64,000 bases of DNA, from IMG/VR virus record IMGVR_UViG_3300042350_002797, positions 124,001-188,000 of that record, one strand, 5' to 3'. Both the position numbers and the translations under genes were made by a program. This document shows positions 23,664-46,260 of this stretch, one piece after another. The number at the start of each line of letters is the position of its first letter. Position 1 is the first letter of the stretch. A model generated the notes under the pieces. That model was not told the origin of the DNA, made no database searches, and was given only the letters and a program-made list of their open reading frames with translations.

Positions 23664-23693
23664 ATTTGCTCCGTTTAATTACTGTACTTATAC

Positions 23694-23722: not shown

Positions 23723-23733
23723 TGGATTTTGGA

Positions 23734-27334: not shown

Positions 27335-27780
27335 GAAACTTCTGAACGACCTTTCTCGATAGGAATGACATTAATGTAACCGGCACCGCGGGTAATATCT
27401 TGCCCTTCCTCTGCCAAAATATTACGTGCTAAGTCGCGAAACCAACGATCAACAATTTCTTCTTCTGGATCTCCATCGAATCCATATCCAGCTTGCTTCA
27501 ATTGTACAATAAAATGCTCATTCCAGTCAAGTTCAAAAAAGCCATTTCTAATATTATCTGGATTTACTTTAGTATCTAAAACTGCTACCCAAGGTTCGTT
27601 ATTAGCAGTAGCTCTTTCTTTCGGAGTCATTTTAGCTAATTCTTCTTGCCGCCGAGCTTCCTCTTCTTTGGCTAAAGCTTCGGCTGCACGAACTAGTGCT
27701 TCAGAAGTTTCTTTTTTTGCTCGTTCTCGTTCTTCCTCGAGTTTTTTAATACCTGTTATTTTTTTAATAAAATCTTTCAT
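27331..27780 (-). CDS. Hypothetical protein
   Basis: Likely start ATG 27780 (TAATG coupling to queE); EPWV.V...GFFELDWN..F motif. Confidence 0.65.
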   Translation of the reverse strand: MKDFIKKITGIKKLEEERERAKKETSEALVRAAEALAKEEEARRQEELAKMTPKERATANNEPWVAVLDTKVNPDNIRNGFFELDWNEHFIVQLKQAGYGFDGDPEEEIVDRWFRDLARNILAEEGQDITRGAGYINVIPIEKGRSEVS

Positions 27781-28628
27781 TAGGTTCCCCATGCATTTTT
27801 GAATAATGGAACTTGTAGTCTGTCACTGTATCTTAGTCCGTGTTTCATTGCTAATTCTGCAACACGGCGATTATTAAGAGCGTATACATTTTCGATACCC
27901 CCAACAGGCATTAAATAAATGTGCCCGCCAAAATCTTCCTGTTTATAAATTTCGATAACTTCTAATGCTTCGTTGACATCGTCTTCGCTAGCAACTACAA
28001 ATTTTAGATATGTATGTCCTAGCTCTTCATAACTTTTTACAATATCTGGTCGTATAGCATCTTCTCTTCTCTCTCCACTAACACTTAACTTTGGGCTCAC
28101 ACTAAATGTAAGATTATGATAGCCGTGTTTATGTGTCCATTTTTCTAGATATTTTCTAAAATCTTTTGATATTTCTTGAGTACCATTAGTTTCAAATGTG
28201 ATATCTTTCAATTTTTTTAATTTATCGTTATCTAATAAATCAGGATAGCTACGTTGCCACCCTAACAAAGGTTCTCCACCTGTTATAACTAAATGTATTC
28301 CTCTCCATTTATTATCAGGTAATAGATCTATCATTCTATTTGCTATGGCATCCACAGTGAGAACAGGACTTAGATCTTTAAATCTTGGATCCCAACTTGC
28401 ATAACTGTCGCATCCAGTTTCTACAATAGGAAGTTCCTCATATTTGTTGTACAAATGTACTACTTCTGCAATATCATCGTTGGCAGTGCTACGTTCTCCA
28501 GGAGGCATGCCGAACCCAGCACAGGTAAAGTTGCAACCAAATGTGCGTAAGAAAATAGAAGGAACACCCATGAAGCGTCCTTCTCCTTGTATACTATAAA
28601 ATAGTTCTGCTATTTTAATTTTACTCAT
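27780..28628 (-). CDS. queE: 7-carboxy-7-deazaguanine synthase (radical SAM)
   Basis: ELFYSIQGEG, FLRTFGCNFTC...CDS (third Cys after an insertion), ITGGEP, ETNGT, SVSPKL, LKFVV, YLMP, RLQ. Confidence 0.92.
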   Translation of the reverse strand: MSKIKIAELFYSIQGEGRFMGVPSIFLRTFGCNFTCAGFGMPPGERSTANDDIAEVVHLYNKYEELPIVETGCDSYASWDPRFKDLSPVLTVDAIANRMIDLLPDNKWRGIHLVITGGEPLLGWQRSYPDLLDNDKLKKLKDITFETNGTQEISKDFRKYLEKWTHKHGYHNLTFSVSPKLSVSGERREDAIRPDIVKSYEELGHTYLKFVVASEDDVNEALEVIEIYKQEDFGGHIYLMPVGGIENVYALNNRRVAELAMKHGLRYSDRLQVPLFKNAWGT

Positions 28629-30619: not shown

Positions 30620-30648
30620 ATTTTATTATATTATTTAGGTTTTGTCAA
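30620..30648 (-). promoter_or_regulatory. sigma70 promoter for folE, with an embedded TAAATA
   Basis: TTGACA-17 nt-TAAAAT; CCTAAATAA inside the spacer. Confidence 0.7.
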
Positions 30649-31428
30649 TCGCAAAAGAGTATTTTTCTTTACTGCGGCACCTAATGTATTTAGGTTTATG
30701 CCACGGTCTTCAGAATATTTTAGTAGTGCTTCTGTATCTTTAGGAAAACAGGCACCGCCAAAACCATAGTATCCATCTGGACCAGGCACTTGAGTATGAC
30801 TATCGCCTATACGTCGATCCATTCTTATTAGGTAGGCAAGGTGTTTCCAATCATAATTATGAGTGTTTGCTAGTTGATTTAATTCATTCATAAAAACAAC
30901 TTTAGTTGCTAGGAATGTATTAATAGAATATTTTACAAATGCCGCTTCGCCTATACCACAATATTCTACGTGTTTAATACCTGGTTGTATTTCTTTTAAA
31001 ATACGTGCTGTGTCACGTTGATAGGCTACCACAGAACCACCTATAATAACCCATTCTGTATTACCAAAATCTGTAACACTAGATTCTGCCCGTAAGAATT
31101 CAGGAACATATACTAAATTAGGTAATTTTTTATTCCATAATTCGTAAAAATCCGGAGGAGCAGTGACTTTGCTAATAATAGTGCCGTTATATCCTTCTAG
31201 ATTTTTTAAAACTTCTTCTACTATACTGGTATCGCAATATCCATTGGTGCCTTGCGGACTAGGAACACAAACAAATACACTAGAACATTCTTTTTTAATT
31301 TGATTGTAAGTAGCTGTATAACCTTTAGCAGGATCTAAAATTATAGGTTCGAAAGATGTTATCAAGTTTTGAGTTATAGCTTCGCCTACGTACCCGTGCC
31401 CAATAATGCCAATTTTTTCATAAATCAT
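30631..31428 (-). CDS. UDP-glucose/GDP-mannose dehydrogenase-family protein (short form lacking the C-terminal domain)
   Basis: GIIGHGYVG, FVCVPSP, PEFLR, KY..N.FLA.KV.F.NE, GFGGACFPKD (catalytic Cys). Confidence 0.9.
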   Translation of the reverse strand: MIYEKIGIIGHGYVGEAITQNLITSFEPIILDPAKGYTATYNQIKKECSSVFVCVPSPQGTNGYCDTSIVEEVLKNLEGYNGTIISKVTAPPDFYELWNKKLPNLVYVPEFLRAESSVTDFGNTEWVIIGGSVVAYQRDTARILKEIQPGIKHVEYCGIGEAAFVKYSINTFLATKVVFMNELNQLANTHNYDWKHLAYLIRMDRRIGDSHTQVPGPDGYYGFGGACFPKDTEALLKYSEDRGINLNTLGAAVKKNTLLRLTKPK

Positions 31429-31640: not shown

Positions 31641-31813
31641 TATTCGACAAGTTCCATTTCCTCTATCATAGGATAATAGATCCAATTCATTTTTTCTTTT
31701 AATTCTTCGCACATAGCCTGAGCAGCTTCTTCTGCACGTTCTTTAGTATAATAGAGTCTTTCCATAGCTCTGTCGCCCTCAGTATTTGTAGCCGATGCAA
31801 GGTAAACTATCAT
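31640..31813 (-). CDS. Small hypothetical protein (57 aa, not in ORF track)
   Basis: MIVYLASATNTEGDRAMERLYYTKERAEEAAQAMCEELKEKMNWIYYPMIEEMELVE*; ATGA overlap with the HIT stop and TAATG overlap with the next gene. Confidence 0.65.
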   Translation of the reverse strand: MIVYLASATNTEGDRAMERLYYTKERAEEAAQAMCEELKEKMNWIYYPMIEEMELVE

Positions 31814-32181
31814 TTTCTATAATTCCCTTTATCCGGAATGACATGTCTAACTCCTCCTCTTGGATCTTCCATATCGCCTTTGCGTCGAGGTATCATATGC
31901 ACATGCGGATACATTACTGTTTGGCCAGCTGCTTCTCCAACATTTTGGCCGATGTTAAAAGCATCCCACCTTTCAGCTTCAACACCTTCGTGTCCGAACT
32001 TGTAGGCTGCTTTGTAGCATTCCCAGAGATTGTTCCAGTTTTCTTCGGTAGGCACAAATAACAAATGCCCTGGGGTAACTGCGTAAGCGTCTCTAAAGAC
32101 CCAGAAGTCTTTAGTTCTGTATTCAATTTCTGTCCACGGTGCTCTTTTTTCATTTAAGGCCTTTTCAATATCTGTCAGCAT
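31810..32181 (-). CDS. HIT-family nucleotide hydrolase
   Basis: D.Y.VTPGHLLFVP, N.G..AGQTV..PHVHMIPR. Confidence 0.92.
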   Translation of the reverse strand: MLTDIEKALNEKRAPWTEIEYRTKDFWVFRDAYAVTPGHLLFVPTEENWNNLWECYKAAYKFGHEGVEAERWDAFNIGQNVGEAAGQTVMYPHVHMIPRRKGDMEDPRGGVRHVIPDKGNYRK

Positions 32182-32545
32182 ACTCGTTCCAAACCATATT
32201 CATTAATGTAGAATAATTATCCCAGGCCTTTTTAACAGCAGGATTATTATTTCTTGCTTTAATCTCAATCATTTCTTTACGCTTCATATGATTGATGTAA
32301 TCTTGATCTCCACGAGATTTAACAATTACGTCATTCATTCTTTGATCAATTTCGGCTAAGGCATGAAAGTTATCTTTAGGTATTAGAATATCATAACACT
32401 CTAACTCTTCTGTAGCAAAATAAAAATCATGTGCATCCTGATAAGTGCTAACCTGTGGTGGTTTAGCCTTTCTAATAGTGCGTGAACTATGACGTAATTG
32501 AATATCCCAATTACAGCAGAAACGATCTAGTTCTTTATTATCCAC
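32165..32545 (-). CDS. Hypothetical protein
   Basis: Probable GTG start at 32545; C-terminal NPAVKKAWDNY helix. Confidence 0.55.
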   Translation of the reverse strand: MDNKELDRFCCNWDIQLRHSSRTIRKAKPPQVSTYQDAHDFYFATEELECYDILIPKDNFHALAEIDQRMNDVIVKSRGDQDYINHMKRKEMIEIKARNNNPAVKKAWDNYSTLMNMVWNEYADRY

Positions 32546-33113
32546 GCCAAAATTCCTCCCAGGGATAGACAATCCAACAGTCTTCTTCGGCTTTGTTAAT
32601 TTCTATAGTTGAATAATCTACTTCTTCTTTGCTAGCAAGATTATTATGAATCACGGCAAATCTTACGTTGTTATGAAAGATATTTTTCCAAGCATGATTA
32701 TTTGGAAGGCATCCACTGGGCCAGTCTTTTTTAATCCAGGCAATAGTAGCACCGGTATCGTTAATGTCATCTACTATCAAAATCTTTTTACGTAGATCTC
32801 GATTAGTAGGATCGTGACGTACAGGCAATCCAGTAATCTCAAAATGCTCATACCCTCGATCATTCATAGGAACATATCCAAAAGCATCTTCGGCCATGCC
32901 TAAGTCGCTCACACACTCGCCACCGTCACGTAAACTGACCTGTAATGGTCGCATAGGAATATCGAGGTATTGACTAAGCATTACAGCAGGAACAGCACCA
33001 CCGCGTGTGATTCCTACAATGTAATCTGGACGCCAGTTATCTTTTTGTAATTGCCTAGCAATTTCGATAACACTGCCTTGAATATCCGACCAAGTTACAT
33101 GTATTTTTTTCAT
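32538..33113 (-). CDS. Type I phosphoribosyltransferase (Gpt/xanthine-guanine-like)
   Basis: IVGITRGG.VPA, PRPP loop ILIVDDINDTGAT, WIVYPWE; likely start ATG 33113. Confidence 0.9.
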   Translation of the reverse strand: MKKIHVTWSDIQGSVIEIARQLQKDNWRPDYIVGITRGGAVPAVMLSQYLDIPMRPLQVSLRDGGECVSDLGMAEDAFGYVPMNDRGYEHFEITGLPVRHDPTNRDLRKKILIVDDINDTGATIAWIKKDWPSGCLPNNHAWKNIFHNNVRFAVIHNNLASKEEVDYSTIEINKAEEDCWIVYPWEEFWRG

Positions 33114-33322
33114 CTTACACCATTTGCTAAGGTTGTCCAAAGTTTAGAGACTTCTTCTTGATTTAGAAAGAAATCGTATGTACTAGAATTGGTTAATTCG
33201 CCTTTGTCGTTATACTGTTCCCCAGTAAACATAAGATGTTTAAGTCCGTCTGGTTTCATACAGTCATTAACTTTTAAACGAAGCTTCCAAGCCGGTTGAT
33301 CTGTTATTAGTTGTTCAATCAT
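33110..33322 (-). CDS. Small hypothetical protein
   Basis: Likely start ATG 33322 (ATGA overlap). Confidence 0.55.
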   Translation of the reverse strand: MIEQLITDQPAWKLRLKVNDCMKPDGLKHLMFTGEQYNDKGELTNSSTYDFFLNQEEVSKLWTTLANGVR

Positions 33323-33682: not shown

Positions 33683-34078
33683 CTACTTGTATCCTTTACG
33701 TTCTCTTTCTTTTCCGTCAAAATCTTCTTTAACCATTTTATAAACTTCTTTAAATTTTCTGTATGCGATTTCCAGTCCAGGATATTCTTTACACATTTCT
33801 TGAACACGTTCGTAATCTGGAAATCTACCATCAAACTCGTCTTTATAAAAATTAGTAAAAGTAGTAAAAGAATCGATACCAGTTAAATCTACTGTTTCTA
33901 TATTGCCTATTGTATAAGATCCTGAATTATAAGGTGTACCTGTTAATGTTATAATGTCCGATGTGTTCAAACTTGGGAGGCTATTCACATCCCAAGTTAC
34001 AGTGATATCATCAGATTTTAAAGATTCTGTTTCATCTAAGGTTACTGTATAAATTGGTTCCTGAGAAGAATTGTTCAC
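33683..34078 (-). CDS. Hypothetical protein
   Basis: T/S-rich N-terminus; C-terminal MCKEYPGLEIAYRKFKEVY. Confidence 0.6.
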   Translation of the reverse strand: MNNSSQEPIYTVTLDETESLKSDDITVTWDVNSLPSLNTSDIITLTGTPYNSGSYTIGNIETVDLTGIDSFTTFTNFYKDEFDGRFPDYERVQEMCKEYPGLEIAYRKFKEVYKMVKEDFDGKERERKGYK

Positions 34079-35126
34079 GTAAAGCCTCCGTTTGTTTGTA
34101 CAACATTGGCAATCTTGTTTCGTAAAAATTCATGTGATCTATTATTGTTTTTACTAACATCTGCCTATGATCCATATAATGGTCCCACGTATCCGTCCAG
34201 TTGCTAGGATATTTGAAATTGTTAAAGTACATTTCTGTATATGAAAGTCTGTCTGGCACCATAGGAATAGCATTAAGAACACAACCTTCGTAACAACTAA
34301 TTCCTAGTGTTTCTTGTAGATTAGCACTAAACACAATTTTTGCTTCACCCAATAAGTTATGATATTCATTTTTCGTCAAGTCTTGTTCTTGGCAAATTAT
34401 AAATTCATACTGAGGTAGTAATTCTTTTAAATCTCTAAAAATATTCACCTGCTTTTCTGGAGCAAGTCTGTGTGGGAAAAGAATCAGATCTCTTTTTTTC
34501 ATTCCTTGATATTGTGTAAAAATATCTTGGAAATACTCCATAGGCCAGCCAGAACGAATTATTTTTTGACTGTTTAATAAGTCTTCGAAATCCTCTTGAT
34601 ACCAAGGATTTTCACTCTTTAAACCATTCATTAATAAATTGTCTACAAACATCTTAATATGAAAATCTGTAGCAAAATAATTATGATCGATAGCATCAAA
34701 GAATGACTTTTCAGCATATCGAACCCACGGCTTATTGCCAATAAGTCTGCCTAAAAAGTCTTGGGGATCATAACTACCGGCGTGCCACAGTGCGTGTATT
34801 TTAACAGGTATACTAAGTAAGCTACTCATGTATTTTAAATTAATAATACCTGGATGCCAAGCATCTGTAAATAAAAAATGATCGTGAGCTTTTATTTTGC
34901 CAGTAGTAAATAATCGGCTAATCTCTTCAATTTGACAAGACTTGTAGATATTAGTGCCACCAAAATTAAGGAAGGCGCCAGGAGTAGTGGCACGAGGAAT
35001 ATCCTCAGGGCCAGAGATAACTTCAACATTTTTATGAACCTTTCGTAATGTTCGGGGTAAATGTTCTTTCCATTGAGCAGTATAACGTGTTTCTACTGCT
35101 TCTAAGTCTACAATATAGATAGTCAT
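34032..35126 (-). CDS. GT-B fold glycosyltransferase (GT4-like)
   Basis: WHAGSYD, FPHRLAPEKQ, FSANLQETLGISCYEG (ExxGxxxxE donor-binding motif), P+VP.RLSY.EM. Confidence 0.85.
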   Translation of the reverse strand: MTIYIVDLEAVETRYTAQWKEHLPRTLRKVHKNVEVISGPEDIPRATTPGAFLNFGGTNIYKSCQIEEISRLFTTGKIKAHDHFLFTDAWHPGIINLKYMSSLLSIPVKIHALWHAGSYDPQDFLGRLIGNKPWVRYAEKSFFDAIDHNYFATDFHIKMFVDNLLMNGLKSENPWYQEDFEDLLNSQKIIRSGWPMEYFQDIFTQYQGMKKRDLILFPHRLAPEKQVNIFRDLKELLPQYEFIICQEQDLTKNEYHNLLGEAKIVFSANLQETLGISCYEGCVLNAIPMVPDRLSYTEMYFNNFKYPSNWTDTWDHYMDHRQMLVKTIIDHMNFYETRLPMLYKQTEALREQFFSGTNLYSNLR

Positions 35127-35350
35127 TAGCGATCTTTTTGTTTACGATAGTTATTGTTACGACCTTTGAAATTCCTGTTAGCTTGTAGAAATCTCTTCCA
35201 TACATCGCTTTCTTTATTATAAAGATCTGCCTGATTAAAAGGCAGTAACTCGAAACGACAAAAGTCGAGCAATGCTTCTAAGTCGTCAAAGATTTTAACG
35301 ATGTTAGGATTGTTATCGAAGTATGCATAGCCTTTGTAATTTTTAGCCAT
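35126..35350 (-). CDS. Small hypothetical protein
   Basis: Start ATG 35350 with AAGGA SD; IFDDLE..LDFCR....FN.ADLY. Confidence 0.65.
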   Translation of the reverse strand: MAKNYKGYAYFDNNPNIVKIFDDLEALLDFCRFELLPFNQADLYNKESDVWKRFLQANRNFKGRNNNYRKQKDR

Positions 35351-35372
35351 TTTTGTTTCCTTGTTTATTAAA

Positions 35373-35768
35373 TTAATATTTGATAAAACTACCATTTTCT
35401 CCATCTTCGGAGACCTCGATCCAAACTTCTCTATTTGGATACTTTTTTGAAATCATGTCATACAAATCATCTGACATCATTTCGCAACTTTTATAATCTA
35501 ATTGCAATACAGCTTGGTCGCCATTATACAATTCTTCAAGCCATCTTTTAAACTGGATGAACTCAATGTCTCTGTCATTGTGATTAACGCCAATCCAGAC
35601 ACGAAAATGAAAGATATGGCGATGAGGATGGCCGAGGAACGAAACGTCATATTTGTCTCCTGTTGCTAGGTTAGGATCAGTTAATGCTGCTGGATATTTA
35701 TGAATACCTTCTTTACGAAAGGTAACCCAAATCATTTTATTTGGTCTTATGTCTTGTTTGATTATCAT
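35373..35768 (-). CDS. QueD-like T-fold protein of the DpdL (CDG decarboxylase) type
   Basis: LGHPHRHIF (LxxxHRHxF) instead of the QueD CxxxHGH motif; DRDIEF, SCE, VSEDGENG. Confidence 0.7.
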   Translation of the reverse strand: MIIKQDIRPNKMIWVTFRKEGIHKYPAALTDPNLATGDKYDVSFLGHPHRHIFHFRVWIGVNHNDRDIEFIQFKRWLEELYNGDQAVLQLDYKSCEMMSDDLYDMISKKYPNREVWIEVSEDGENGSFIKY

Positions 35769-36307
35769 TTGTATTCAAAAAAATCGTTAAAGGTTGATTT
35801 ACTCATTGATTCAATTTTCTTCATAGATCCTACAGGTATTCGAAATACATAAGAATTTTCTGTTCTTTGTTCAAAATGACCGTATTCTGATCCTCTTATG
35901 TATGAAGACCTATCTCCATTAATTATTTTCTGTCTTCCAATTTCGTAAGCTTCTTCTATTTTTTCTTGTATGTATGGATCTGTAAAATCGAATAAATCTT
36001 GGTTCGTGACTATTCCATCGGCAGTAGTTATTCTAAATTGCTTTTGTAGTTTTTCAAAAATATGAGTTTGTTTATAAGATAAAGAACAAATATCTTGAAC
36101 AGTTATAGTTCCTACACTATTGGCAGAACCAGAATTTACATCTTTAGTTTTAACTTCTATACCAATCTGTTGTAAATCTGCGCCAGGGCCTTGGTTAATG
36201 TTCCACCCATCTCTAGACATAACTTGTTCAAATTGTTTTCCTCGAATACTATGATCTTTAGATAATACAGTACCAGTATAATCTTTTTTGATTCGTTTAA
36301 TTTTCAT
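35765..36307 (-). CDS. MutH/Sau3AI-like PD-(D/E)xK endonuclease
   Basis: RGKQFE...N.GPGADL..IGIEVKT; downstream EKI..AYE..RQKIING and YVFRI resemble the Sau3AI/MutH layout. Start ATG 36307 (ATGA overlap). Confidence 0.65.
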   Translation of the reverse strand: MKIKRIKKDYTGTVLSKDHSIRGKQFEQVMSRDGWNINQGPGADLQQIGIEVKTKDVNSGSANSVGTITVQDICSLSYKQTHIFEKLQKQFRITTADGIVTNQDLFDFTDPYIQEKIEEAYEIGRQKIINGDRSSYIRGSEYGHFEQRTENSYVFRIPVGSMKKIESMSKSTFNDFFEYK

Positions 36308-36837
36308 ACTGGGCTGTCCTGTGTATATTGATCCCAATGTGTATACTTAGTTTTACGCATTAGATCGTGTAGTTGATGGGTCCATACTCCAGGATTAGTA
36401 GCACCCCAAGTACGGTCGTCAATTTTAAGTGTTGCGTTGTAGTTGTAAAGTTTAATGTAAGGTAATTTTACACTAATCATAGGAATAAATCTATCTTGTT
36501 CGCACCACCCTTCTTCGTGTATTTCTTCAGCATATTTGACATCGAAGTCTAAGCAGACCCAATATCCTGCCTCCAAGCATCCCATAATCCTGTTATCCCA
36601 AATTTTCCAGTTATCATATGTTGCCGGATTAAAACTTTGACTAGTACCAAAGTAAATTTGTTTAATACGTTTATCTTTATCTTCGAAGCTTTGAGAATCT
36701 TCTGCTATTGCAAGAATGTCTTTTAGACTCGGTGTTCCTACAACGAACAATGTGTACATACCGTGAGCTACAGTATGTTCTACTTCATAGCCTGTGAAAT
36801 AAGTTACATCTTGCCTTTGTTCTGTGTTTAATCCCAT
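36304..36837 (-). CDS. Conserved-looking hypothetical protein within the deazaguanine cluster
   Basis: FTGYEVEHT..GM.TLFVVG, IYFG..QSF, LKIDD..W.ATNPGVW. Confidence 0.65.
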   Translation of the reverse strand: MGLNTEQRQDVTYFTGYEVEHTVAHGMYTLFVVGTPSLKDILAIAEDSQSFEDKDKRIKQIYFGTSQSFNPATYDNWKIWDNRIMGCLEAGYWVCLDFDVKYAEEIHEEGWCEQDRFIPMISVKLPYIKLYNYNATLKIDDRTWGATNPGVWTHQLHDLMRKTKYTHWDQYTQDSPV

Positions 36838-37739
36838 TTAATATATCCTCTACTGTAGCCTTGTGGTCTGTTTAATCCATCTTCGAATGCTTGTTGCCAT
36901 TCAGTGTTGCGATTATAGCACTTAGTCCAGAATGTGTCAACTTTTAAATTATTTGTTTTTACCCAAAGCTCTGCTTCGTACATTGCATTATAAAATCCGT
37001 TATGTCTTGGACTAGGCATAGCAATAGTATTGGCATTCCAAAGTAGTTCGCTAAATGTAGTTGTGAATGATTCTTTTTCCGCAGCTATAATCCAAACGCC
37101 TTGCGGAGCCAACAGTTTACGTTTCAGCACTTCTGTGTGTTCTCTAATGTCAATAATCACATCATATTTTTCGTAACTTGGCTCTTGTACTAATACATTC
37201 TCATTTGCCCACAGTTCGTGATTGCTATTCCCCCAAACTTCAATAGTACCAAATTTGTAATAATCTAGTTTTAGTGTGTTGTAAGCAACCCAGGCAAGAA
37301 AGCCACTACCAATTATCAAACATTTAGATAGTTGTAGTATTTTGCTTTGAAGTAATGTGCTGTTTTGTTTGACAATGTTAATACCACAAGCTACTGGTTC
37401 TAAAATATATTTAGGCTCGGCGCTAGGAACTACTATAAATTCTCTAGCTCTAACATTGTAATAGTCGGCATATGCAGGCTCTCCTCGAGTCGCTACATAA
37501 TCGCCTTCTTTAACATTGAGTATTTGTCCACCAACTTTGGTAACAATACCTAATCCTTCGTGACCACTCATATGAGCAGGCAATGTAGGAAATTTGCCTG
37601 TCATCATATCTATATCACTACGGCAAACACCAGTCATAACAGCTTTAACTTCAATTTCAGTATCAGCAGGTTCTGGTTTAGTCCATTCTTCTTCTACAAA
37701 CTTACCATCACTGTATGTTCTAAGTAAACGTACTTTCAA
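36828..37739 (-). CDS. Zn-dependent (MDR) alcohol/sugar dehydrogenase
   Basis: GVCRSD, GHEG.G.V..VG, EPVAC, IIGSGF; likely TTG start at 37739 with GGAGA SD. Confidence 0.88.
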   Translation of the reverse strand: MKVRLLRTYSDGKFVEEEWTKPEPADTEIEVKAVMTGVCRSDIDMMTGKFPTLPAHMSGHEGLGIVTKVGGQILNVKEGDYVATRGEPAYADYYNVRAREFIVVPSAEPKYILEPVACGINIVKQNSTLLQSKILQLSKCLIIGSGFLAWVAYNTLKLDYYKFGTIEVWGNSNHELWANENVLVQEPSYEKYDVIIDIREHTEVLKRKLLAPQGVWIIAAEKESFTTTFSELLWNANTIAMPSPRHNGFYNAMYEAELWVKTNNLKVDTFWTKCYNRNTEWQQAFEDGLNRPQGYSRGYIKWD

Positions 37740-38611
37740 AAGTTCTCCATTCTTTCGTGAATCCAATAATCTATTGTATTTTGTTTACTCCAGAATTTGT
37801 CATTATCGAGATTACGTATTGCATCGTCGATCATACGTTCGTAAGCATCTTCTGGGCATAATCCTAATTCATATGTAAATGTGCTATTGCCGAAATCCAT
37901 TTCAATGTTACGTTTGTCTTTATCTAATGTGCGCCAGTCTGCGGTCAATTTCCATTTGTTACTAAATCGTATTTGAGCAAAGTCGTCTACATCGTATGTA
38001 CCATCTGAATTAACTGTGCCGTATTCTGTGTTTAATAAATCTTTTAAATGGTATCTCATCAAACTAGAACGATTATTCATAGCAGTAGTTAACCAGTCAG
38101 GGTTTAACGCTATATACAAGCTCAGTAAGTGAGGCATTAGATCTCTACTAACTCCACCATAAGCAAGTTTTTTTGTAGTAAACCAGCTTCCAGGACTAGG
38201 CACACGATCTTGATTTAACCAATTAAGTCTGACCCTGTCCGCCGATTGAGCAGATTCTTGTAATTCTTTGATGTTACTACGCCACATATTATTCTTCACC
38301 ATCATAAAACGTGTATCAGGAAAGGAGTGAACAAGAGTCATCCAATTACTAGCCGTGGCCACACCAGGCTTTTCGATAAACACAATTTTACATTCGTGGG
38401 AAATTTTTACAGCTAATTGAAAATGTGTAAAATTTGGTGTACAGATGTGAGCAGTATCAAAAGGGCCTCTAGCTAGTATAGCTGATACAGCATCAGGAAA
38501 GTCTGCTTTTTTACTAATATCAGAATCTACTGTTACAATCTCGGCTCCTAGATTGGTCAGTACATTTTTGTATAATTGACCGATACCCATGCCTATAATA
38601 AGACTTTTCAT
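37736..38611 (-). CDS. Gfo/Idh/MocA-family oxidoreductase
   Basis: IIGMGIG, ICTPNFTH, IEKPG, GG..RDLMPH, DVDD. Confidence 0.88.
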   Translation of the reverse strand: MKSLIIGMGIGQLYKNVLTNLGAEIVTVDSDISKKADFPDAVSAILARGPFDTAHICTPNFTHFQLAVKISHECKIVFIEKPGVATASNWMTLVHSFPDTRFMMVKNNMWRSNIKELQESAQSADRVRLNWLNQDRVPSPGSWFTTKKLAYGGVSRDLMPHLLSLYIALNPDWLTTAMNNRSSLMRYHLKDLLNTEYGTVNSDGTYDVDDFAQIRFSNKWKLTADWRTLDKDKRNIEMDFGNSTFTYELGLCPEDAYERMIDDAIRNLDNDKFWSKQNTIDYWIHERMENF

Positions 38612-39111
38612 TGAATTTTAAGTTCTTCTCTAAGAATGTTTTCTACTAATTCGTTTAGAGTAATATCTTGTTCGTGCGCAATTCTGAAAAGTTTATTTAA
38701 TAAATTGTCTGGAAGGTCTAATGGTACTTGCACACGTTCATCATAATCGATACCCATAACAATATGTGTAGCTTTTTCTATGATGTCATCAGCTAAATCA
38801 ATATCTACAAAGTTAACATGATCATATGCTTCTTTAACATCTACACCTCTGGTTTTAGATTCGTTATTATGTGCTTCTCTAAATTCAGGATGTATCCACC
38901 GATAACTGTTTTCTTTATCATAATCGTGTGCTTCGAATTTATATACAGTAGTAGTTTTAGTATCAAATACAATACCGATACTAAAACCGTCGTGATCTCC
39001 ATTCCAGCAATCTAATGCATGAGCGTTCGGACCAAAACAGTTCCATAGATAGTCGCTTCCTTCAGTGATACGATAATCTACACATTCCATAAAATCTTTA
39101 ATTGTAATCAT
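38608..39111 (-). CDS. Hypothetical protein with C-terminal ribbon-helix-helix-like segment
   Basis: VPLDLPDNLLNKLFRIAHEQDITLNELVENILRE. Confidence 0.6.
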   Translation of the reverse strand: MITIKDFMECVDYRITEGSDYLWNCFGPNAHALDCWNGDHDGFSIGIVFDTKTTTVYKFEAHDYDKENSYRWIHPEFREAHNNESKTRGVDVKEAYDHVNFVDIDLADDIIEKATHIVMGIDYDERVQVPLDLPDNLLNKLFRIAHEQDITLNELVENILREELKIQ

Positions 39112-39353
39112 TTTACATTTTCCTCATACTGTTTAAAAAGTCTAGTTACTGGTTCCATTCTTTCTTGAAAAATATCAGGACTTGTTTGAGATGTTTTATT
39201 CATATCATAATAATCAGGATAGTGTCGTAGACACCATCTTGCTTCATCTCTGATAATTTTAGGAACTCGGGGAGTATGCTGTGGGTTACACAAGTTTACT
39301 AACAGCTCTCTTGTTCTAAGCACAGCTCGAAATCTTTCATCTGGCAAAGTCAT
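39108..39353 (-). CDS. Small conserved phage protein
   Basis: MTLPDER.RAV...TPRVPK.IR..A...LRHYP motif. Confidence 0.65.
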   Translation of the reverse strand: MTLPDERFRAVLRTRELLVNLCNPQHTPRVPKIIRDEARWCLRHYPDYYDMNKTSQTSPDIFQERMEPVTRLFKQYEENVK

Positions 39354-40894
39354 TTTATACTTTCTTCAAGTTCATCAAGTTTATCTTCGGAAAAGTCTTC
39401 AACGACGTCAGATTGTACATTATCATTATCATTATCGTCAAAGAATTTGGCAAAATTGGTATTTGCGTTTATAGTGCGTTTTCCTGTGTAACCTCTAGTG
39501 CCAGGAATTGCCATCCAAAACTTACTAAATTCTTCTACGATTTGATCAGCAACTCCTCTATCACTAGTTGCAAAAATTGCATCTATTACGTCTTTAAAAA
39601 AGATTCTATCAAATTTTTCTTGAACTAGCATACCAGGACATAAACCCGCATCATATTGTCGATTGGCTTCTTGAACAGAACTAAGATGCATCCAAACATT
39701 ATGCCCCATGAGAATAGCATAAGTGAAACTATCCCAACTAGTTTTATTTTCTTTACCCATCCTATTTAGGTTACCAGGAGCGTAAACACAAACTTCGTTA
39801 GTTTTAACACCATCTAATACAGGGCTATTTTCTACATACTTGAATATCCCATCTTGAATTAATGTATCTCTAAATAATCTTGTATCTGTTGCGTATTGTT
39901 TATTATCTAAAGTAGGTAACATTCTATATAACCACTTCTTACGATCTTCAATTTCTGTCTGTATGTACATTTGGCCATTAGCAGTGGCCAAAAATGGACT
40001 TGCACAATCAAAACTAATAGTAAAGTTTTCATTATGATATTTTCTTACAGCACGTTGAATATCGGTAAGTAATAATGCCCATTCCAATTTACTTGTTCCT
40101 AAGAAGTGCATCCAGTCTTGTTTACCTTTTTCTAATAAACCGTCAAATCTTAAAGATACAAGTCTTTTCAAAGTGAGATGCAAATCGCACATATTTTGTC
40201 CACCCATAGCCCAACCGTTAAAATGTGCATCTGGAAATACCTTCGGATCGCAATAGTGTTTCATACGTTGATACCAATCTTCAGCATCTGAATGATTTTC
40301 ACCTTGTAACACGTTTAAAAATTTACAATTACCATTTCGATTTTTAATAAAGTAGTCATTATTTAGATATGTGCCTTGAACTGCTTCCATATAGGAATTA
40401 ATTTTACTAGCAGCAGCGCCTTCAGGACTACGAGCTACCCAAGCAGGAATATCTAAACACATTCCATAATCCATTAGACTGTCCATCCAAGTCAATACTT
40501 GACTACGTTTTTTCTGTGCAGCCGGACAATTAGGATCTTTCCAGTCGGCTTCCCACTTTCCTTTACCTATCTGGAATCCTCCAGAGTCCCCAAGAACCCA
40601 ACTGTCTCCATTTCTTGGACGATTCCTGAACATAGATTCTCTATCATCATTTTTAGCTAAATCTAAATTTGCGTGACCAGCAGAATATAAACACCACTTA
40701 TAATAGAATAATCCTTTTTGAGGATCTAGATAATTAAGTCCTTCGACATCGTTAATAAAGTTTTGTGGTATTCTGCTAGGTTGTACATAAGGATATCTAT
40801 GTCTCTGATATCCAATGAACGATGCATAAAAGCCGCTAGTAGCAGGTAAAAATAATGCATAATCGTTTTGTGTGGCAGTTAAATCTGTATTCAT
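39350..40894 (-). CDS. dpdA: tRNA-guanine transglycosylase-like DNA base-exchange enzyme (DpdA family)
   Basis: GDSGGFQ, LDIP, NVLQG, GWAMGG, HFLG, FDCASP, late HN; context of queE/folE and of clamp/polymerase. Confidence 0.82.
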   Translation of the reverse strand: MNTDLTATQNDYALFLPATSGFYASFIGYQRHRYPYVQPSRIPQNFINDVEGLNYLDPQKGLFYYKWCLYSAGHANLDLAKNDDRESMFRNRPRNGDSWVLGDSGGFQIGKGKWEADWKDPNCPAAQKKRSQVLTWMDSLMDYGMCLDIPAWVARSPEGAAASKINSYMEAVQGTYLNNDYFIKNRNGNCKFLNVLQGENHSDAEDWYQRMKHYCDPKVFPDAHFNGWAMGGQNMCDLHLTLKRLVSLRFDGLLEKGKQDWMHFLGTSKLEWALLLTDIQRAVRKYHNENFTISFDCASPFLATANGQMYIQTEIEDRKKWLYRMLPTLDNKQYATDTRLFRDTLIQDGIFKYVENSPVLDGVKTNEVCVYAPGNLNRMGKENKTSWDSFTYAILMGHNVWMHLSSVQEANRQYDAGLCPGMLVQEKFDRIFFKDVIDAIFATSDRGVADQIVEEFSKFWMAIPGTRGYTGKRTINANTNFAKFFDDNDNDNVQSDVVEDFSEDKLDELEESIK

Positions 40895-42336: not shown

Positions 42337-45000
42337 TTACATTTCGAAAAGACTATTAAATGTATTCTTTTCTTCGGTACTTCTGATGTTCCAATTTAAA
42401 ACACCAATAAGATTTTCTAATTTTTTATCGATGATAGTTGCCTCCATTTCTCCATGATCGAATGGCAAATCTTTAAACCATTGCGGCAAACGTAATTCAT
42501 CAACCGGGTATGCTACACTAGAATACTCTAAAGGGTTATCTTTTAATTTACACACAATAACTTTAGCTCCGTCTGTAATATTCATACTGTATTTGTCATC
42601 GAACATACGTTTTAATGTGTTCCAATTAATGCTAGCACGAACATGTCCTGGCATATTGGCCTTTCCTTGCCTTTCTTCTTTATTTTGATATTCCGTGATA
42701 TTATTTGCACGTTTGGGAGAACCTTTCTCCCAGCCAGGGCGAGCCTTAAATGCGATTCTAAATTCACTAATAAAATCTAAAACTTCTCTTTCAGAAGATC
42801 CAGTTAATACCATTTCTAACACATCACTTAAGAAGTCTTGAATAAATTCTGGAGTATCGCTGCGTTTTAGATCTAACCCCATGGCCTTAATTTTACCAGG
42901 CTTACCGTCTACGTCTACTCGTTTGCCTTCTTTATCATAATAAAGAACAGCATAACGTTTTTTTGTAATAAACAATGCTTTAGATCCGACAATTTCTCTT
43001 CCTGCCTTTATAACTTCTCCTCTACTAGTAGGACAATGAAATACATCTTGCATAAATTTAGGAAAAGTTTTATTAACTTCTTCTCCAATTTGATCATACA
43101 ATGACGTTATGGTTTCTTTTGACCACGGAATTTTTCCAGCGTCGATATCCTTTTTAAGCGTCTTATAAGCAGAAAAATAACAACTATCAGTATCGCCGTA
43201 GATAATAGCTTTTCCAACATGATTATATTCTCCTGTTATAATTTCATTTACTTTACTGGCCATGTGTTTGGCAATTTGTCTACCAACTAGTGTAGTACTT
43301 TGTCCAATTCGTTTATCAAAGAATCTGCAACCAGGATTAAGAATAGCACCATACAAACTGTTCAAGTTAATTTTTTTAACTAGTTGTCGTTTATCCCAAT
43401 ACTCTTCTTCGATCTTATTTCCGTTAGAAATACATTCTTTTAGTTTTGCCTGCATTTCTTTACGTTCCGCATACCATCGTTTTAATAATCCAGGTATAAT
43501 ACCTTCTTTTTCATATGTAAAGATTGTACCATTACTGCTTAACATAAATGGCTGATTACTTTCGAATATTAATTTATAAACTTCAGCAGCACTTAAAATG
43601 TCATGAGTATCATCTTCCCAGTCAATAACAACCTCTGTTCCTATTTCTTTATTCATTACAGCTTCATATTCGAGAGAACCAAATTTTCCCTCCCAACTAG
43701 CTGCGAAGCTTTTTCCTTTGGCCATTAAATTTTGTATGTATTCTTCGGTCATAGTTTGACGTAATTGTCCAACAATAGTTTCTGGCCCCATATTAAGCGC
43801 ACGAATAGCACTCGGGTATAGACTGTTAATATCCAGACTTCCTACCCAATCTTGTAATCCTTCTTTAGGATAAGCAACATATGCACCGGCAGCAGCAGTG
43901 TCTTCACGTTCACTCATCTTTGTTCTATTAGGAACTTGAAATCCTCTTCGATGTGCTTCATTGATAATAGCTTGCTCTGTAACAGCTACCGCACCCATAG
44001 TTGTTTGTAGAAGTACAGTATTTTCATGAGCCAGTTTGTTACTTAAATCTAAGAATTTTAATTTTTTATCTAACTTATCAAGCAGCGCACAGTCTTGTCT
44101 ATTGTATCGTATAAATTCTTTGAAGTCATTGTTATACAATTGATCTAACGTACCTTCGTACGGGACTTTTCTTTCACCAAGTTCATATTCCGCGATGGCA
44201 TCCAATCTATAGGAATGTCTTTCTTCGTAAGTATATTTGCGGTATAGTTCGAGGTAGTCAAGGTGTACCCGTCCAACCAAGTCATAGGTTTGTGCTGTTT
44301 TTCCGTAACGTTCATATTCTCTCTTTCTAGGATGTAGATTCCATAGACAAAATCTTCGTGTGTCGTCTTTGCTTAGGGTTTTAGTTACTCGATTCACGGT
44401 ATATGGAATATCGAATCCTTCACTATTCCAGCCACTTAATATATCTGCATCTTGTATTAAATTAAGAAAAGTATCTAACATATCTGCTTCGTTATCAAAC
44501 AAATGAGTGTTAGGAAATTCTTCAACAAGCTTTTTAGCATCTTCCATACTGACACCCTTTGGAGGAATAGCCAAACAAACCATAGTTTCTAGCCATTGAA
44601 GATATACTGCTATAGCAGTAATCGGCATAAAAGCATCGTCGGGGCTTGCATAACCTCTTTCAGGATCGAAGTCTACTTCAATATCGAAAAATGCTGCATT
44701 TAGCTTAGGAGCGTCTTGTCCTAAGTAATGCTCGCTTAGAGATACAAATATAGGGTTAATATCTGCTTCGTACAGAGTTTGATTACTATGTATTTTTAGT
44801 TCTTTGTGAAAATCTTTGCTAGTTTTGCAAACGATTCTACTTAGGGGATCCCCATAGATGCTGGTAAATTTACCTCGAGCATCCGGGTAATAAAAAGTGT
44901 ATTTTACTGGATATTCTTTGAAAACTCTTTTACCATGTTCATTGCGTTCAACAATATGTATGATATCAGAGTCGCGGTTAAAGTATGCGTCTACGTACAT
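42337..45000 (-). CDS. Family B DNA polymerase (T4 gp43-like)
   Basis: Exonuclease motifs FFDIE, GWNS..FD, YN..D; polymerase motifs DINSLYPS, K..LNSLYG, YGDTDS, KKRY. No intein seen. Confidence 0.97.
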   Translation of the reverse strand: MYVDAYFNRDSDIIHIVERNEHGKRVFKEYPVKYTFYYPDARGKFTSIYGDPLSRIVCKTSKDFHKELKIHSNQTLYEADINPIFVSLSEHYLGQDAPKLNAAFFDIEVDFDPERGYASPDDAFMPITAIAVYLQWLETMVCLAIPPKGVSMEDAKKLVEEFPNTHLFDNEADMLDTFLNLIQDADILSGWNSEGFDIPYTVNRVTKTLSKDDTRRFCLWNLHPRKREYERYGKTAQTYDLVGRVHLDYLELYRKYTYEERHSYRLDAIAEYELGERKVPYEGTLDQLYNNDFKEFIRYNRQDCALLDKLDKKLKFLDLSNKLAHENTVLLQTTMGAVAVTEQAIINEAHRRGFQVPNRTKMSEREDTAAAGAYVAYPKEGLQDWVGSLDINSLYPSAIRALNMGPETIVGQLRQTMTEEYIQNLMAKGKSFAASWEGKFGSLEYEAVMNKEIGTEVVIDWEDDTHDILSAAEVYKLIFESNQPFMLSSNGTIFTYEKEGIIPGLLKRWYAERKEMQAKLKECISNGNKIEEEYWDKRQLVKKINLNSLYGAILNPGCRFFDKRIGQSTTLVGRQIAKHMASKVNEIITGEYNHVGKAIIYGDTDSCYFSAYKTLKKDIDAGKIPWSKETITSLYDQIGEEVNKTFPKFMQDVFHCPTSRGEVIKAGREIVGSKALFITKKRYAVLYYDKEGKRVDVDGKPGKIKAMGLDLKRSDTPEFIQDFLSDVLEMVLTGSSEREVLDFISEFRIAFKARPGWEKGSPKRANNITEYQNKEERQGKANMPGHVRASINWNTLKRMFDDKYSMNITDGAKVIVCKLKDNPLEYSSVAYPVDELRLPQWFKDLPFDHGEMEATIIDKKLENLIGVLNWNIRSTEEKNTFNSLFEM

Positions 45001-45214: not shown

Positions 45215-45495
45215 AACATTCTTACTAGACCTACAATATCAATGGTAACTAACAACATATAATTTGCTAACATCCCAAACGACCTGCGAGTCCAAGCTGC
45301 CCAAGCGTACATAGAACAACCGCTAATCCAAATAGGATAAAGAATAAGCAACGGCGGATTAGGGACGGTTGCTGCCATAGCGATACTACAACCAATACTA
45401 AGGACCCAAGCAAACAACTCGACAGTAAAACGTATACGATTAGATCGCCAATCATCTTTTATCCATTGAAATATGTTATAAACAATATCGTTCAT
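45211..45495 (-). CDS. Small multi-pass membrane protein
   Basis: Three hydrophobic segments in 94 aa. Confidence 0.7.
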   Translation of the reverse strand: MNDIVYNIFQWIKDDWRSNRIRFTVELFAWVLSIGCSIAMAATVPNPPLLILYPIWISGCSMYAWAAWTRRSFGMLANYMLLVTIDIVGLVRML

Positions 45496-46236: not shown

Positions 46237-46260
46237 AAAAGCCCCTTGCGGGGCTTTTTT
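46235..46260. terminator. Bidirectional intrinsic terminator
   Basis: AAAAAAGCCCC-TTGC-GGGGCTTTTTT between convergent genes. Confidence 0.92.

Follow-up and report, generated by a model that had tools for sequence, protein, structure and literature searches.

Phages that replace guanine in their DNA with 7-deazaguanine derivatives are known to use small substituents: cyano, amido, aminomethyl, methyl or formyl derivatives, carboxy, or nothing. In the DpdL/DpdA3 type of system, represented by Cellulophaga phage phiST, FolE, QueD and QueE are encoded together with a divergent TGT-superfamily transglycosylase and with DpdL, a QueD/PTPS paralogue in which the signature LxxxHRHxF replaces CxxxHGH; there is no QueC, and the DNA contains plain dDG (Cui et al. 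2023, PMC10516641). DpdL is proposed to be a 7-carboxy-7-deazaguanine (CDG) decarboxylase, although this activity has never been shown, even in that study. The DNA of the Pseudomonas jumbo phage PA5oct (Wroclawvirus) resists restriction at G-containing sites and is targeted by a modified-G-specific nuclease, and the modified G is chemically undefined (PMC12191111). All known sugar-bearing DNA bases, in contrast, are pyrimidines, such as the 5-hydroxymethylcytosine glucosylated in T-even phages by GT-B alpha- and beta-glucosyltransferases. Two-enzyme epimerisation of sugars or cyclitols through a keto intermediate is exemplified by Bacillus subtilis IolG (NAD+) with IolW (NADPH), which convert myo- to scyllo-inositol; WbpB, WlbA and GnnA are UDP-sugar 3-dehydrogenases.

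We analysed a 64,000-nucleotide window (positions 124,001 to 188,000 of IMG/VR record IMGVR_UViG_3300042350_002797) from a 364-kb jumbo phage. A first-pass annotation had noted two overlapping NAD(P)-dependent oxidoreductase genes between dpdA and the DpdL and glycosyltransferase (GT) genes, and a truncated UDP-glucose-dehydrogenase-family gene directly preceding folE. It inferred that the pair either makes an unusual NDP-sugar donor or remodels the sugar after transfer to DNA.

Results

The oxidoreductase pair and its neighbours

The observation is confirmed: both oxidoreductase genes, their overlap and their neighbours are as annotated (Table 1). One correction is needed, since two small ORFs lie between dpdA and the pair, and a 177-aa and a 190-aa ORF lie between the pair and DpdL. 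A nucleotide search with positions 36000-40000 against 50,697 phage records found nothing, and only protein-level searches found relatives. Pfam, PHROGs and NCBIfam gave no family for the 514-aa, 364-aa, 177-aa, 190-aa and 92-aa proteins.

Table 1. Features of the predicted deazaguanine modification cluster, in window coordinates
Position	Strand	Length (aa)	Assignment	Supporting observations
39350..40894	-	514	DpdA-like protein, putative DNA guanine transglycosylase of the TGT superfamily	GDSGGFQ motif
39108..39353			small ORF	
38608..39111			small ORF	
37736..38611	-	291	Gfo/Idh/MocA-family NAD-dependent dehydrogenase, first gene of the pair	Pfam PF01408 (GFO_IDH_MocA), 29.2 bits against a cut-off of 24
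36828..37739	-	303	Zn-type medium-chain dehydrogenase/reductase (MDR) of the polyol-dehydrogenase kind, second gene of the pair	Pfam ADH_N (PF08240), 42.3 bits against a cut-off of 23.5; longest ORF runs to 37766
36304..36837	-	177	protein of unknown function	more than 2000 homologues, none with a Pfam family
		190	ORF between the pair and DpdL	
35373..35768	-		DpdL (QueD paralogue, proposed CDG decarboxylase)	LGHPHRHIF; 37% identity to phiST DpdL, 55% to ACP17
35126..35404	-	92	conserved small ORF between DpdL and GT	found in 67 of 120 loci at this position
34032..35126	-	364	putative GT-B/GT4-type glycosyltransferase	homologues annotated GT4 in phages PAC2 and Phosso
32538..33140	-		phosphoribosyltransferase (PRT)-domain protein	Pfam PF00156, E 1.7e-12; kept in the cluster in PA5oct and many loci
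31810..32181	-		HIT-domain nucleotide hydrolase/transferase	Pfam PF01230, E 6.9e-9
30631..31428	-	265	UDP-glucose/GDP-mannose-dehydrogenase-like protein lacking the C-terminal UDP-binding domain	PF00984, E 3.5e-20; PF03721, E 9e-10; no PF03720
29825..30601	-		GTP cyclohydrolase I (FolE)	phrog_2197, E 1.9e-45; Pfam PF01227 in public gene calls
27780..28628	-		QueE-like radical SAM CDG synthase	NCBIfam QueE models, E 1e-15 to 2e-8, all below the curated cut-offs; homologous to the annotated QueE of ACP17 and PAC2

The first enzyme has the N-terminal Rossmann domain of the Gfo/Idh/MocA oxidoreductases, although the Pfam match covers only profile positions 52-109 and the C-terminal Pfam domain scores below its cut-off (17.5 bits against 27). 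It shows GxGxG at residues 7-11, a VTVD acidic end of beta-2, the EKP motif (E80-K81-P82) and GGVSRDxxPH; across 37 relatives G7/G11, D29, K81-P82, D157 and H161 are invariant. The best PDB match of the family profile is DgpA (7xr9, E 7e-11), the 3''-oxidase of C-glucosides, followed by inositol 2-dehydrogenase and levoglucosan dehydrogenase (to E 7.5e-6). NCBIfam xylose, levoglucosan and inositol dehydrogenase models are also matched, whereas only 2 of the 37 members touch the UDP-GlcNAc 3-dehydrogenase model. All sequence matches to characterised enzymes are remote and far below the family cut-offs. The phage enzyme is 40-120 residues shorter than DgpA, levoglucosan dehydrogenase and inositol 2-dehydrogenase, and no DgpB/C-type lyase partner is present.

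The likely start of the second gene is the TTG at 37739, which overlaps the TGA of the upstream gene as TTGA and has GGAGA seven bases upstream; one public gene call gives the same product. The overlap, in the form NTGA, is kept in 51 of 65 unique relatives. C39, H60, E61, E114, C118 and GSGFLA are invariant in the family, which supplies the predicted catalytic zinc ligands, and no acidic residue follows beta-2. By these motifs, both enzymes of the pair look active. ADH_zinc_N is not detected by sequence, but the structural model (pLDDT 92.5) aligns over its full length with MDR structures at TM 0.70-0.80. The Foldseek top hits are threonine, sorbitol, butanediol and glucose dehydrogenases (E 1e-17 to 1e-19), and TarJ is also among the structural relatives. 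There is no Cys cluster between residues 85 and 105 (GEPAYADYYNV), and hence no four-cysteine structural-zinc lobe, which excludes the classical tetrameric ADH type but not the superfamily, where many but not all members have this lobe.

The 514-aa DpdA-like protein has no Pfam, NCBIfam or PDB sequence hit, and a PDB profile search with its family alignment gave no usable hit. The GDSGGFQ motif, containing the catalytic Asp of the superfamily, is invariant, and hhalign gives 96.9% probability to a homologue on contig L146 (see below) that does hit PF01702 and 93.8% to the TGT-domain protein of Vibrio phage GR7B, whereas alignments of the family to ACP17 gp123 and to a 503-aa protein of contig L147 were not significant. 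The 364-aa GT4-type protein likewise has no Pfam hit, and a PDB profile search with its alignment gave no usable hit, but diverged homologues at 24-30% identity hit Glycos_transf_1 (PF00534), and it is adjacent or close to DpdL in all 9 contexts compared. No similarity to the T4 glucosyltransferases was detected by PHROGs, Pfam or the PDB profile search. The UDP-glucose-dehydrogenase-like protein, encoded directly upstream of folE, has the N-terminal NAD-binding and central domains with GxGxxG and the GFGGACFPKD cysteine motif, but is not a complete three-domain member of its family: it lacks the C-terminal UDP-binding domain, ends at residue 265 and scores below the NCBIfam cut-off (122.5 bits against 189.8). 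It is specific to this clade and its position varies.

The 177-aa protein is present in 58/60 loci, in PA5oct (41% identity) and in ACP17 (28%). It travels with the pair in PA5oct and in L133 (a locus described below), or with DpdA/DpdL in ACP17 and in a further record, G001. Its model has pLDDT 71 and no convincing fold match: an ESM Atlas feature search gave no usable hit, Foldseek against the PDB gave nothing at E <= 0.001, a wider structural comparison gave only Z about 6 to assorted beta/alpha barrels, which is background level, and hhalign to phiST CGPG_00066 was negative.

FolE, QueE and the DpdA-like gene lie in the window, and QueD lies at genome position 217545-218138 (52.5% identical to ACP17 QueD), so that the gene set of a phage 7-deazaguanine DNA modification system is found in one genome. 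The genome has no QueC, no sugar nucleotidyltransferase and no thymidylate-synthase-like hydroxymethylase.

Linkage of the pair to DpdA, DpdL and the glycosyltransferase

That the pair is usually found away from dpdA/GT loci had been named as an outcome that would count against the interpretation, and the reverse was found. The linkage is seen in 79 unique IMG/VR loci. The two genes are adjacent in 78/79 loci, and in this clade the pair sits with DpdA in 66/72 loci, DpdL in 48/50 and GT in 43/45. The IMG/VR clade and PA5oct share a collinear replication module, however, and adjacency within that lineage therefore amounts to one evolutionary event. Six far more diverged phage contigs (L146 to L151; GC 26-51%, MDR identity 28-36%), with shuffled gene orders, all carry the DpdL signature and a GT4 within a few genes of the MDR; L146, L147, L148, L149 and L151 also keep a Gfo-type gene, whereas L150 does not and has DpdL directly beside the MDR. 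Sugar-nucleotide enzymes lie beside the pair elsewhere. L148 has the order NTP_transferase (a sugar-1-phosphate nucleotidyltransferase), Gfo-like, MDR, GT4, and L147 has an SDR epimerase and an RGP-family gene. A scan of genome contigs gave one relevant locus, L133, in which GH13, GT2 and GT2-DUF2064 genes follow the pair and no deazaguanine gene lies within its 6.2 kb; the rest were generic Gfo proteins.

PA5oct has homologues of every part (Gfo 32%, MDR 35.5%, 177-aa protein 41%, DpdA-like 34.5%, GT 41% and DpdL 55.5% identity, plus QueE, FolE and PRT), but its Gfo-MDR-177-aa triplet lies about 25 kb from DpdA-GT-DpdL, and no UDP-glucose-dehydrogenase-like gene was seen in the two regions compared. 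The pair is also present in phage MIJ3. Two contigs have moved the pair beside a cupin and a radical-SAM gene, and PA5oct and the records G001 and G002 show that the pair can sit 25-108 kb from dpdA. Every sufficiently complete genome examined that has the pair also has DpdA, FolE and the rest. The MDR occurs beside DpdL-GT without a Gfo gene in L150 and probably on one further contig (P0175). Acidovorax phage ACP17, Phosso and the Xanthomonas and Burkholderia phages have DpdL and GT without the pair, and the pair is therefore not essential to the core. By tblastn, phiST has no GT4, Gfo, MDR or 177-aa homologue, and the main text of PMC10516641 does not mention a glycosyltransferase, as judged by a search requiring that term.

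No member of the MDR family (E <= 1e-30) turned up in an ordinary bacterial context, and bacterial hits begin only where the profile fades into generic MDRs. Three MDR matches lay on contigs of 2-10 kb with little context, and P0232 and P0286 proved to be ordinary bacterial MDRs outside the family.

Discussion

The interpretation offered by the first-pass annotation is partly supported: comparative genomics ties the pair to the dpdA/GT system and to sugar chemistry, and the nucleotidyltransferase directly upstream of the pair in L148 fits the NDP-sugar donor option, but the substrate, the oxidise-then-reduce order and the timing relative to transfer are inferred. We favour, with moderate confidence, a model in which the two genes form a translationally coupled accessory tailoring unit of a conserved phage module. 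In this view, FolE, QueD and QueE would make CDG, DpdL would convert it, the DpdA-like transglycosylase would put the deazaguanine base into DNA, and the GT4 would add a sugar. The Gfo enzyme, probably NAD+-dependent, would oxidise a secondary hydroxyl of a sugar, and the Zn-MDR, probably using NADP(H), would reduce a keto group, with net epimerisation or a keto sugar as the result. Our preferred version is that the pair acts on a host-supplied NDP-hexose before the GT4 uses it, so that the DNA would carry an unusual sugar. As the genome lacks QueC and a sugar nucleotidyltransferase, the pathway should stop at the DpdL product and the sugar donor must come from the host, as is expected also for the T-even phages. 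What our analysis establishes is the family assignments (tentative for the DpdA-like and GT4-type proteins, where they rest on homologues), the intact catalytic motifs, the coupling, and the conserved linkage to DpdL, GT4 and DpdA. The sugar substrate, the cofactor split (read from motifs only), metal binding, the order of reactions, action on the donor rather than the product, the DpdL activity, the presence of a deazaguanine in the virion DNA, and that the GT4 targets the deazaguanine at all, are inferences.

The cofactor motifs follow the logic of IolG and IolW, an NAD-type oxidase with an NADP-type partner whose cofactor site lacks the acidic residue, but here the second enzyme is a Zn-MDR and not a second Gfo member or an aminotransferase. 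The occurrence of the MDR without a Gfo partner is not predicted by a strict two-enzyme oxidise/reduce cycle. The Gfo enzyme resembles enzymes acting on free or aglycone-bound sugars more than the known UDP-sugar 3-dehydrogenases. As in the T-even phages, a GT-B-type enzyme is encoded beside the base-modification genes, but here dedicated oxidoreductases accompany the GT. Also, unlike 5-hydroxymethylcytosine, the likely target is a purine analogue with no known hydroxyl. We considered that the GT might serve a ThyA-type hydroxymethyl-pyrimidine pathway, but set this aside because the genome has no thymidylate-synthase-like gene and the GT sits between DpdA and DpdL in ACP17.

An alternative, which we regard as unlikely, is that the pair remodels the sugar after transfer, the GT4 first attaching an ordinary host hexose to the deazaguanine, either as free base or nucleoside or already in DNA, after which the Gfo enzyme would oxidise a ring hydroxyl of the bound sugar and the MDR would reduce it, or a neighbouring position. 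The best solved relatives of the Gfo family, DgpA and levoglucosan dehydrogenase, act on aglycone-bound or free sugars and not on nucleotide sugars, the genome has no sugar nucleotidyltransferase, and the pair sits next to DpdA in most lineages. However, the gene order in L148 is typical of donor synthesis, the similarity to DgpA is remote, and Rossmann dehydrogenases are not known to work on sugars attached to duplex DNA.

It is less likely still that the pair works on the pterin or deazapurine precursor, for example by reducing keto groups of a polyol or diketo side chain on a tetrahydropterin or 7-substituted deazaguanine made with DpdL, which would create the hydroxyl that the GT4 then glycosylates. 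Something must supply an acceptor hydroxyl that 7-deazaguanine lacks; DpdL is a QueD/PTPS paralogue lying directly beside the MDR in L150; the structural neighbours of the MDR include butanediol and threonine dehydrogenases, which act on short vicinally substituted chains; and two reductases would match two carbonyls of a pyruvoyl-type side chain. Against this, phiST has DpdL without the pair or a GT and contains plain dDG, ACP17 has GT and DpdL without the pair, so that the pair cannot be the only source of an acceptor, and sugar-nucleotide genes accompany the pair elsewhere. That the pair is an auxiliary metabolic unit, for instance of host sugar or cyclitol metabolism, placed in the replication module only by inherited synteny, is very unlikely, because although the shared collinear module, the distant position of the pair in PA5oct, G001 and G002 and the context of L133 would allow it, the MDR is kept next to DpdL and GT4 in the six rearranged contigs of very different GC, five of them with a Gfo-type gene, the genomes with the pair that were sufficiently complete also have DpdA and FolE, and the MDR family was not found in an ordinary bacterial context.

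The final base of these phages is probably not plain dDG. It is possible, although this remains tentative, that a whole group of phages, including the cultivable PA5oct and abundant environmental jumbo phages, replaces guanine with a 7-deazaguanine carrying a rare or keto sugar, attached by the GT4 to a base without a hydroxyl, possibly as a C- or N-glycoside, and made or finished by the Gfo and MDR pair. This would be the first glycosylated purine analogue in DNA, with a dedicated redox tailoring step.

The components of the deazaguanine pathway are already known from phiST-type systems; what differs here is the addition of a GT4-type glycosyltransferase, the Gfo and MDR pair and the 177-aa protein, a gene set that joins deazaguanine modification to the glycosylation of DNA bases and probably specifies a modification not yet described chemically. 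It is widespread, as shown by the more than 2000 homologues of the 177-aa protein alone and by the 83 clusters of the MDR family at 50% identity, and it occurs in PA5oct, a phage-therapy candidate, which like ACP17, with the core but without the pair, is in culture. If the pair tailors the sugar, it would explain how these phages vary a DNA decoration under pressure from modification-dependent nucleases, and it would also supply new enzymes for making modified nucleotides.

Genomic setting of the oxidoreductase pair

The virus record from which bases 124001-188000 were examined is 364,554 bp long, is rated complete by CheckV and has a GC content of about 35%. The region around the Gfo/Idh/MocA and MDR genes is a dense run of minus-strand genes belonging to a replication module, which includes a family B polymerase, a 247-aa protein whose PA5oct-type homolog is annotated as PCNA, RNase H and a MoxR ATPase. 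The MoxR-type AAA ATPase sits beside a DUF2201 metallopeptidase/VWA protein, and these two are conserved in PA5oct at 44-53% identity. Just beyond the polymerase, public gene calls list an Annexin Pfam hit for a 279-aa protein and a Phage_DsbA hit for an 87-aa protein. Elsewhere in the window, one 2-kb interval drops to 23.7% GC against about 35% in the rest, and the sign of the GC skew changes near 16-20 kb.

Coordinates of the features discussed
Sequence	Coordinates	Strand	Feature
Window	6001-8000		Low-GC interval
Window	22497-24825	minus	MoxR-type AAA ATPase and DUF2201 metallopeptidase/VWA protein
Window	30631-31428	minus	UDP-glucose-dehydrogenase-like protein, 265 aa
Window	31810-32181	minus	HIT protein
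Window	32538-33140	minus	Phosphoribosyltransferase-domain (PRT) protein
Window	36304-36837	minus	P0003, 177 aa
Window	36828-37766	minus	MDR dehydrogenase ORF (303-aa product from the TTG start)
Window	37736-38611	minus	Gfo/Idh/MocA dehydrogenase, 291 aa
Window	38608-39111	minus	167-aa ORF between dpdA and the pair
Window	42337-45000	minus	Family B polymerase
Window	45495-45758	minus	87-aa protein, Phage_DsbA hit
Window	46259-47098	minus	279-aa protein, Annexin hit
Genome (C1), outside the window	217545-218138		QueD
L091 and L118 (loci of contigs G001 and G002)	8659-17612 (L091); 9132-14421 (L118)		Relocated Gfo-MDR pair and following genes
L131 (Acidovorax phage ACP17)	81.6-87.0 kb		QueD-FolE-P0003-gp123-GT-DpdL-QueE
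L133 (Bacteroidetes MAG contig JADFGB010000072.1)	2734-6201		Diverged Gfo-MDR pair with carbohydrate genes
L147	9923-11434		Protein of the 320-500-aa family
L148	10897-13361		Protein of the 320-500-aa family
L149	17356-18288		PRPP-synthetase-like gene
L150	10956-11987		Protein of the 320-500-aa family

The first ORF of the pair passes the Pfam GFO_IDH_MocA threshold and carries IIGMGIG, a VTVD acidic end of beta-2, FIEKPG and GGVSRDLMPH. The second passes the ADH_N threshold and carries GVCRSD, GHEG, EPVAC and GSGFLA. The stop codon of the first gene and a TTG start of the second share the four bases TTGA, with GGAGA just upstream, and one public gene call gives the same 303-aa product. Across relatives, the NTGA overlap is present in 51 of 65 unique sequence contexts.

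The 514-aa DpdA-like protein upstream has an invariant GDSGGFQ. It is recognized by none of the family libraries searched, although hhalign gives 96.9% probability against a homolog from another contig that does hit Pfam TGT, and 93.8% against a TGT-domain protein of Vibrio phage GR7B. The 131-aa protein downstream has the exact DpdL signature LxxxHRHxF defined by Cui et al. (PMC10516641) and is 37% identical to phiST DpdL. The 364-aa protein is assigned as a GT4-type glycosyltransferase from its annotated and Pfam-positive homologs. The UDP-glucose-dehydrogenase-like gene just upstream of folE encodes the NAD-binding domain with its Rossmann motif, the central domain and the catalytic-cysteine motif GFGGACFPKD of UDP-glucose dehydrogenases, but lacks the C-terminal nucleotide-sugar (UDP-binding) domain. 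It is restricted to this clade and its position varies, the gene sitting in related phages between PolB and the PCNA-like gene instead of next to folE.

The first-pass annotation, which placed two overlapping oxidoreductase genes between dpdA and the DpdL/GT genes and a truncated UDP-glucose-dehydrogenase-family gene directly before folE, is therefore confirmed in what it observed. One small correction is that short ORFs separate the pair from dpdA and from DpdL. One of these, the 167-aa ORF between dpdA and the pair, has a weak C-terminal Arc/CopG ribbon-helix-helix match (phrog_582, E 1.6e-4) and is present only in close relatives.

Another, the 177-aa protein P0003, is the best-conserved member of the neighborhood, with more than 2000 homologs at 72-98% identity, and with 41% identity to PA5oct and 28% to ACP17 gp122. 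It follows either the oxidoreductase pair or DpdA/DpdL, depending on the lineage. No Pfam, PHROG or PDB match was found for P0003, and its structural model looks like a partial beta/alpha barrel without a recognizable fold.

The phosphoribosyltransferase-domain protein and the HIT protein are kept inside the deazaguanine cluster here and in PA5oct (PRT), and a PRPP-synthetase-like gene lies near the cluster in L149, one of the diverged contigs described below, which hints at a nucleotide-level step for the modified base. The QueD gene of this phage, 52.5% identical to ACP17 QueD, lies about 57 kb from the rest of the deazaguanine genes.

Family relationships of the two enzymes

In 37 relatives of each protein the cofactor and catalytic residues are invariant, so both are under selection as enzymes. 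A profile of the Gfo family finds DgpA, the 3''-dehydrogenase of C-glucosides, first among solved structures (E 7e-11), followed by an uncharacterized oxidoreductase, inositol 2-dehydrogenase and levoglucosan dehydrogenase. All 37 Gfo members touch the NCBIfam xylose-dehydrogenase model, 36 touch the levoglucosan-dehydrogenase model and only 2 touch the UDP-GlcNAc 3-dehydrogenase model, although all of these scores are far below the curated cut-offs. The MDR structural model is confident (pLDDT 92.5) and superposes best on the polyol-dehydrogenase branch, comprising among its matches threonine, sorbitol, butanediol, xylitol and archaeal glucose dehydrogenases, YdjJ and TarJ. The MDR lacks the structural-zinc lobe. 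It also has no acidic residue after beta-2, which suggests NADP(H), whereas the Gfo enzyme has the Asp typical of NAD enzymes; this reading of the cofactors is an inference from motifs.

Conservation of the pair within the clade

Back-translated pattern scans of IMG/VR returned more than 120 loci, of which 79 carry the pair after removal of duplicates. The two genes are adjacent in 78 of the 79. Where the contig reaches far enough, DpdA is found within 2.5 kb upstream in 66/72 loci, the 177-aa gene follows in 58/60, DpdL in 48/50, GT in 43/45 and FolE in 27/30. Among 50,697 GenBank phage records, only the PA5oct group (Wroclawvirus) has the pair, again overlapping and followed by the 177-aa gene. 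PA5oct also has DpdA-like, GT4, DpdL, PRT and QueE genes in a block collinear with the window, but the Gfo-MDR-P0003 triplet lies about 25 kb away. A 2025 preprint reports that PA5oct DNA resists several restriction enzymes at G-containing sites and is attacked by a nuclease specific for modified G, the chemistry of the base being undetermined (PMC12191111).

Linkage of the pair in diverged contexts

All of these arrangements could descend from a single one, and we therefore looked for independent contexts. In contig G001 the pair has left the dpdA locus, which retains DpdA-P0003-DpdL-p92-GT, p92 being a small conserved protein, and now stands 108 kb away. Contig G002 has the same relocated pair, but it is a fragment that CheckV rates 16% complete and its dpdA locus could not be assessed. 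The relocated pair is followed by a cupin (152 aa), a radical-SAM protein (360 aa), two unknowns, two 2OG-Fe(II) oxygenases and a second radical-SAM protein, and a SAM methyltransferase lies upstream on the other strand. The window genome has none of these. The block is conserved between two contigs whose Gfo proteins are only 52% identical. The pair therefore moves as a unit.

A full HMMER search of 1.84 billion representatives with the MDR profile found 83 clusters at E <= 1e-30, and diverged members lying on long contigs were then examined in their gene context.

Gene order around diverged MDR homologs (L146-L151 are our designations for the contigs; x, intervening gene)
Contig	GC	Gene order around the MDR
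L146	49%	QueD-QueE-FolE-x-DpdL-GT-DpdA-Gfo-MDR
L147	30%	QueD-QueE-FolE-x-DpdL-GT-Gfo-MDR, then an SDR epimerase and an RGP-family gene
L148	39%	DpdL-NTP_transferase-Gfo-like-MDR-GT
L149	26.5%	DpdL-GT-Gfo-MDR-DpdA
L150	51%	QueD-FolE-DpdL-MDR-GT
L151	37%	QueD-QueE-...-FolE-DpdL-GT-x-Gfo-MDR-DpdA-PolB

Each of these DpdL candidates carries LxxxHRHxF, and clustering of all ORFs confirms the shared families. A further protein family of 320-500 aa follows the MDR or GT in L147, L148 and L150, the three contigs that lack the window-type DpdA. It may be an alternative transglycosylase, although hhalign of the L147 protein to the window's DpdA-like family was negative. A 6.2-kb contig binned with a Bacteroidetes genome (L133) has a diverged Gfo-MDR pair and a 75-aa P0003-like fragment, followed by a GH13 alpha-amylase-family enzyme, a GT2 and a GT2 fused to DUF2064 (a CofC-like nucleotidyltransferase), a carbohydrate context with no deazaguanine gene on the contig. 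The weaker hits of the MDR profile (E about 1e-14 to 1e-22) are ordinary bacterial MDRs in unrelated contexts, which marks the edge of the family. Linkage that survives this much divergence and reshuffling is good evidence that the MDR, and usually the Gfo enzyme, work with DpdL and the GT4.

Possible roles of the pair

The genome of the phage has no QueC, so the base pathway should end at the DpdL product. It has no sugar-1-phosphate nucleotidyltransferase, so the donor of the GT4 must come from the host, and it has no thymidylate-synthase-like hydroxymethylase, so no ThyA-type route to a hydroxymethyl-pyrimidine acceptor was found. The best-supported reading, which we consider somewhat more likely than not, is that the pair tailors the sugar within this module, through an NAD-type oxidation of a ring hydroxyl and an NADP-type reduction that would give an epimer or a keto sugar. 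Whereas the conservation of the genes and their linkage are what the comparisons show, the proposed chemistry is inferred. The NTP_transferase-Gfo-MDR-GT order in L148 favors action on the NDP-sugar donor, and the larger part of our confidence in sugar tailoring goes to this donor route. The resemblance of the Gfo enzyme to DgpA and levoglucosan dehydrogenase keeps remodeling of the sugar after transfer open, and this alternative, counted separately, is possible but unlikely. The proposal of the first-pass annotation, that the pair makes an unusual NDP-sugar donor or remodels the sugar after transfer to DNA, is supported only in part.

It is also formally possible that the enzymes work on a pterin or deazapurine side chain to create the hydroxyl that the GT4 needs. 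This deserves mention because 7-deazaguanine has none, but ACP17 and phiST argue against it and we regard it as improbable. A function unrelated to the module appears very unlikely.

The pair as an accessory to DpdL-type clusters

The system is a phage 7-deazaguanine module of the DpdL/DpdA3 kind (PMC10516641) with three additions, a GT4, the oxidoreductase pair and P0003, which were described in none of the papers that could be searched. phiST has DpdL with neither a GT nor the pair, and its DNA contains plain dDG (PMC10516641). The DpdL-GT core exists without the pair in ACP17, where gp123 is the presumed DpdA, in Phosso, and in the Xanthomonas (X1/BUDD) and Burkholderia (BCSR5) phages. L150 and, probably, the contig of protein P0175 have the MDR but no Gfo gene beside it. 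The pair is therefore an accessory layer on a GT-bearing variant of the DpdL pathway, and the MDR is its more constant member. We found no paper noting that a GT4 lies next to or near DpdL in several unrelated cultured phages that lack the oxidoreductase pair, an arrangement which suggests that glycosylation is a general feature of many DpdL-type clusters.
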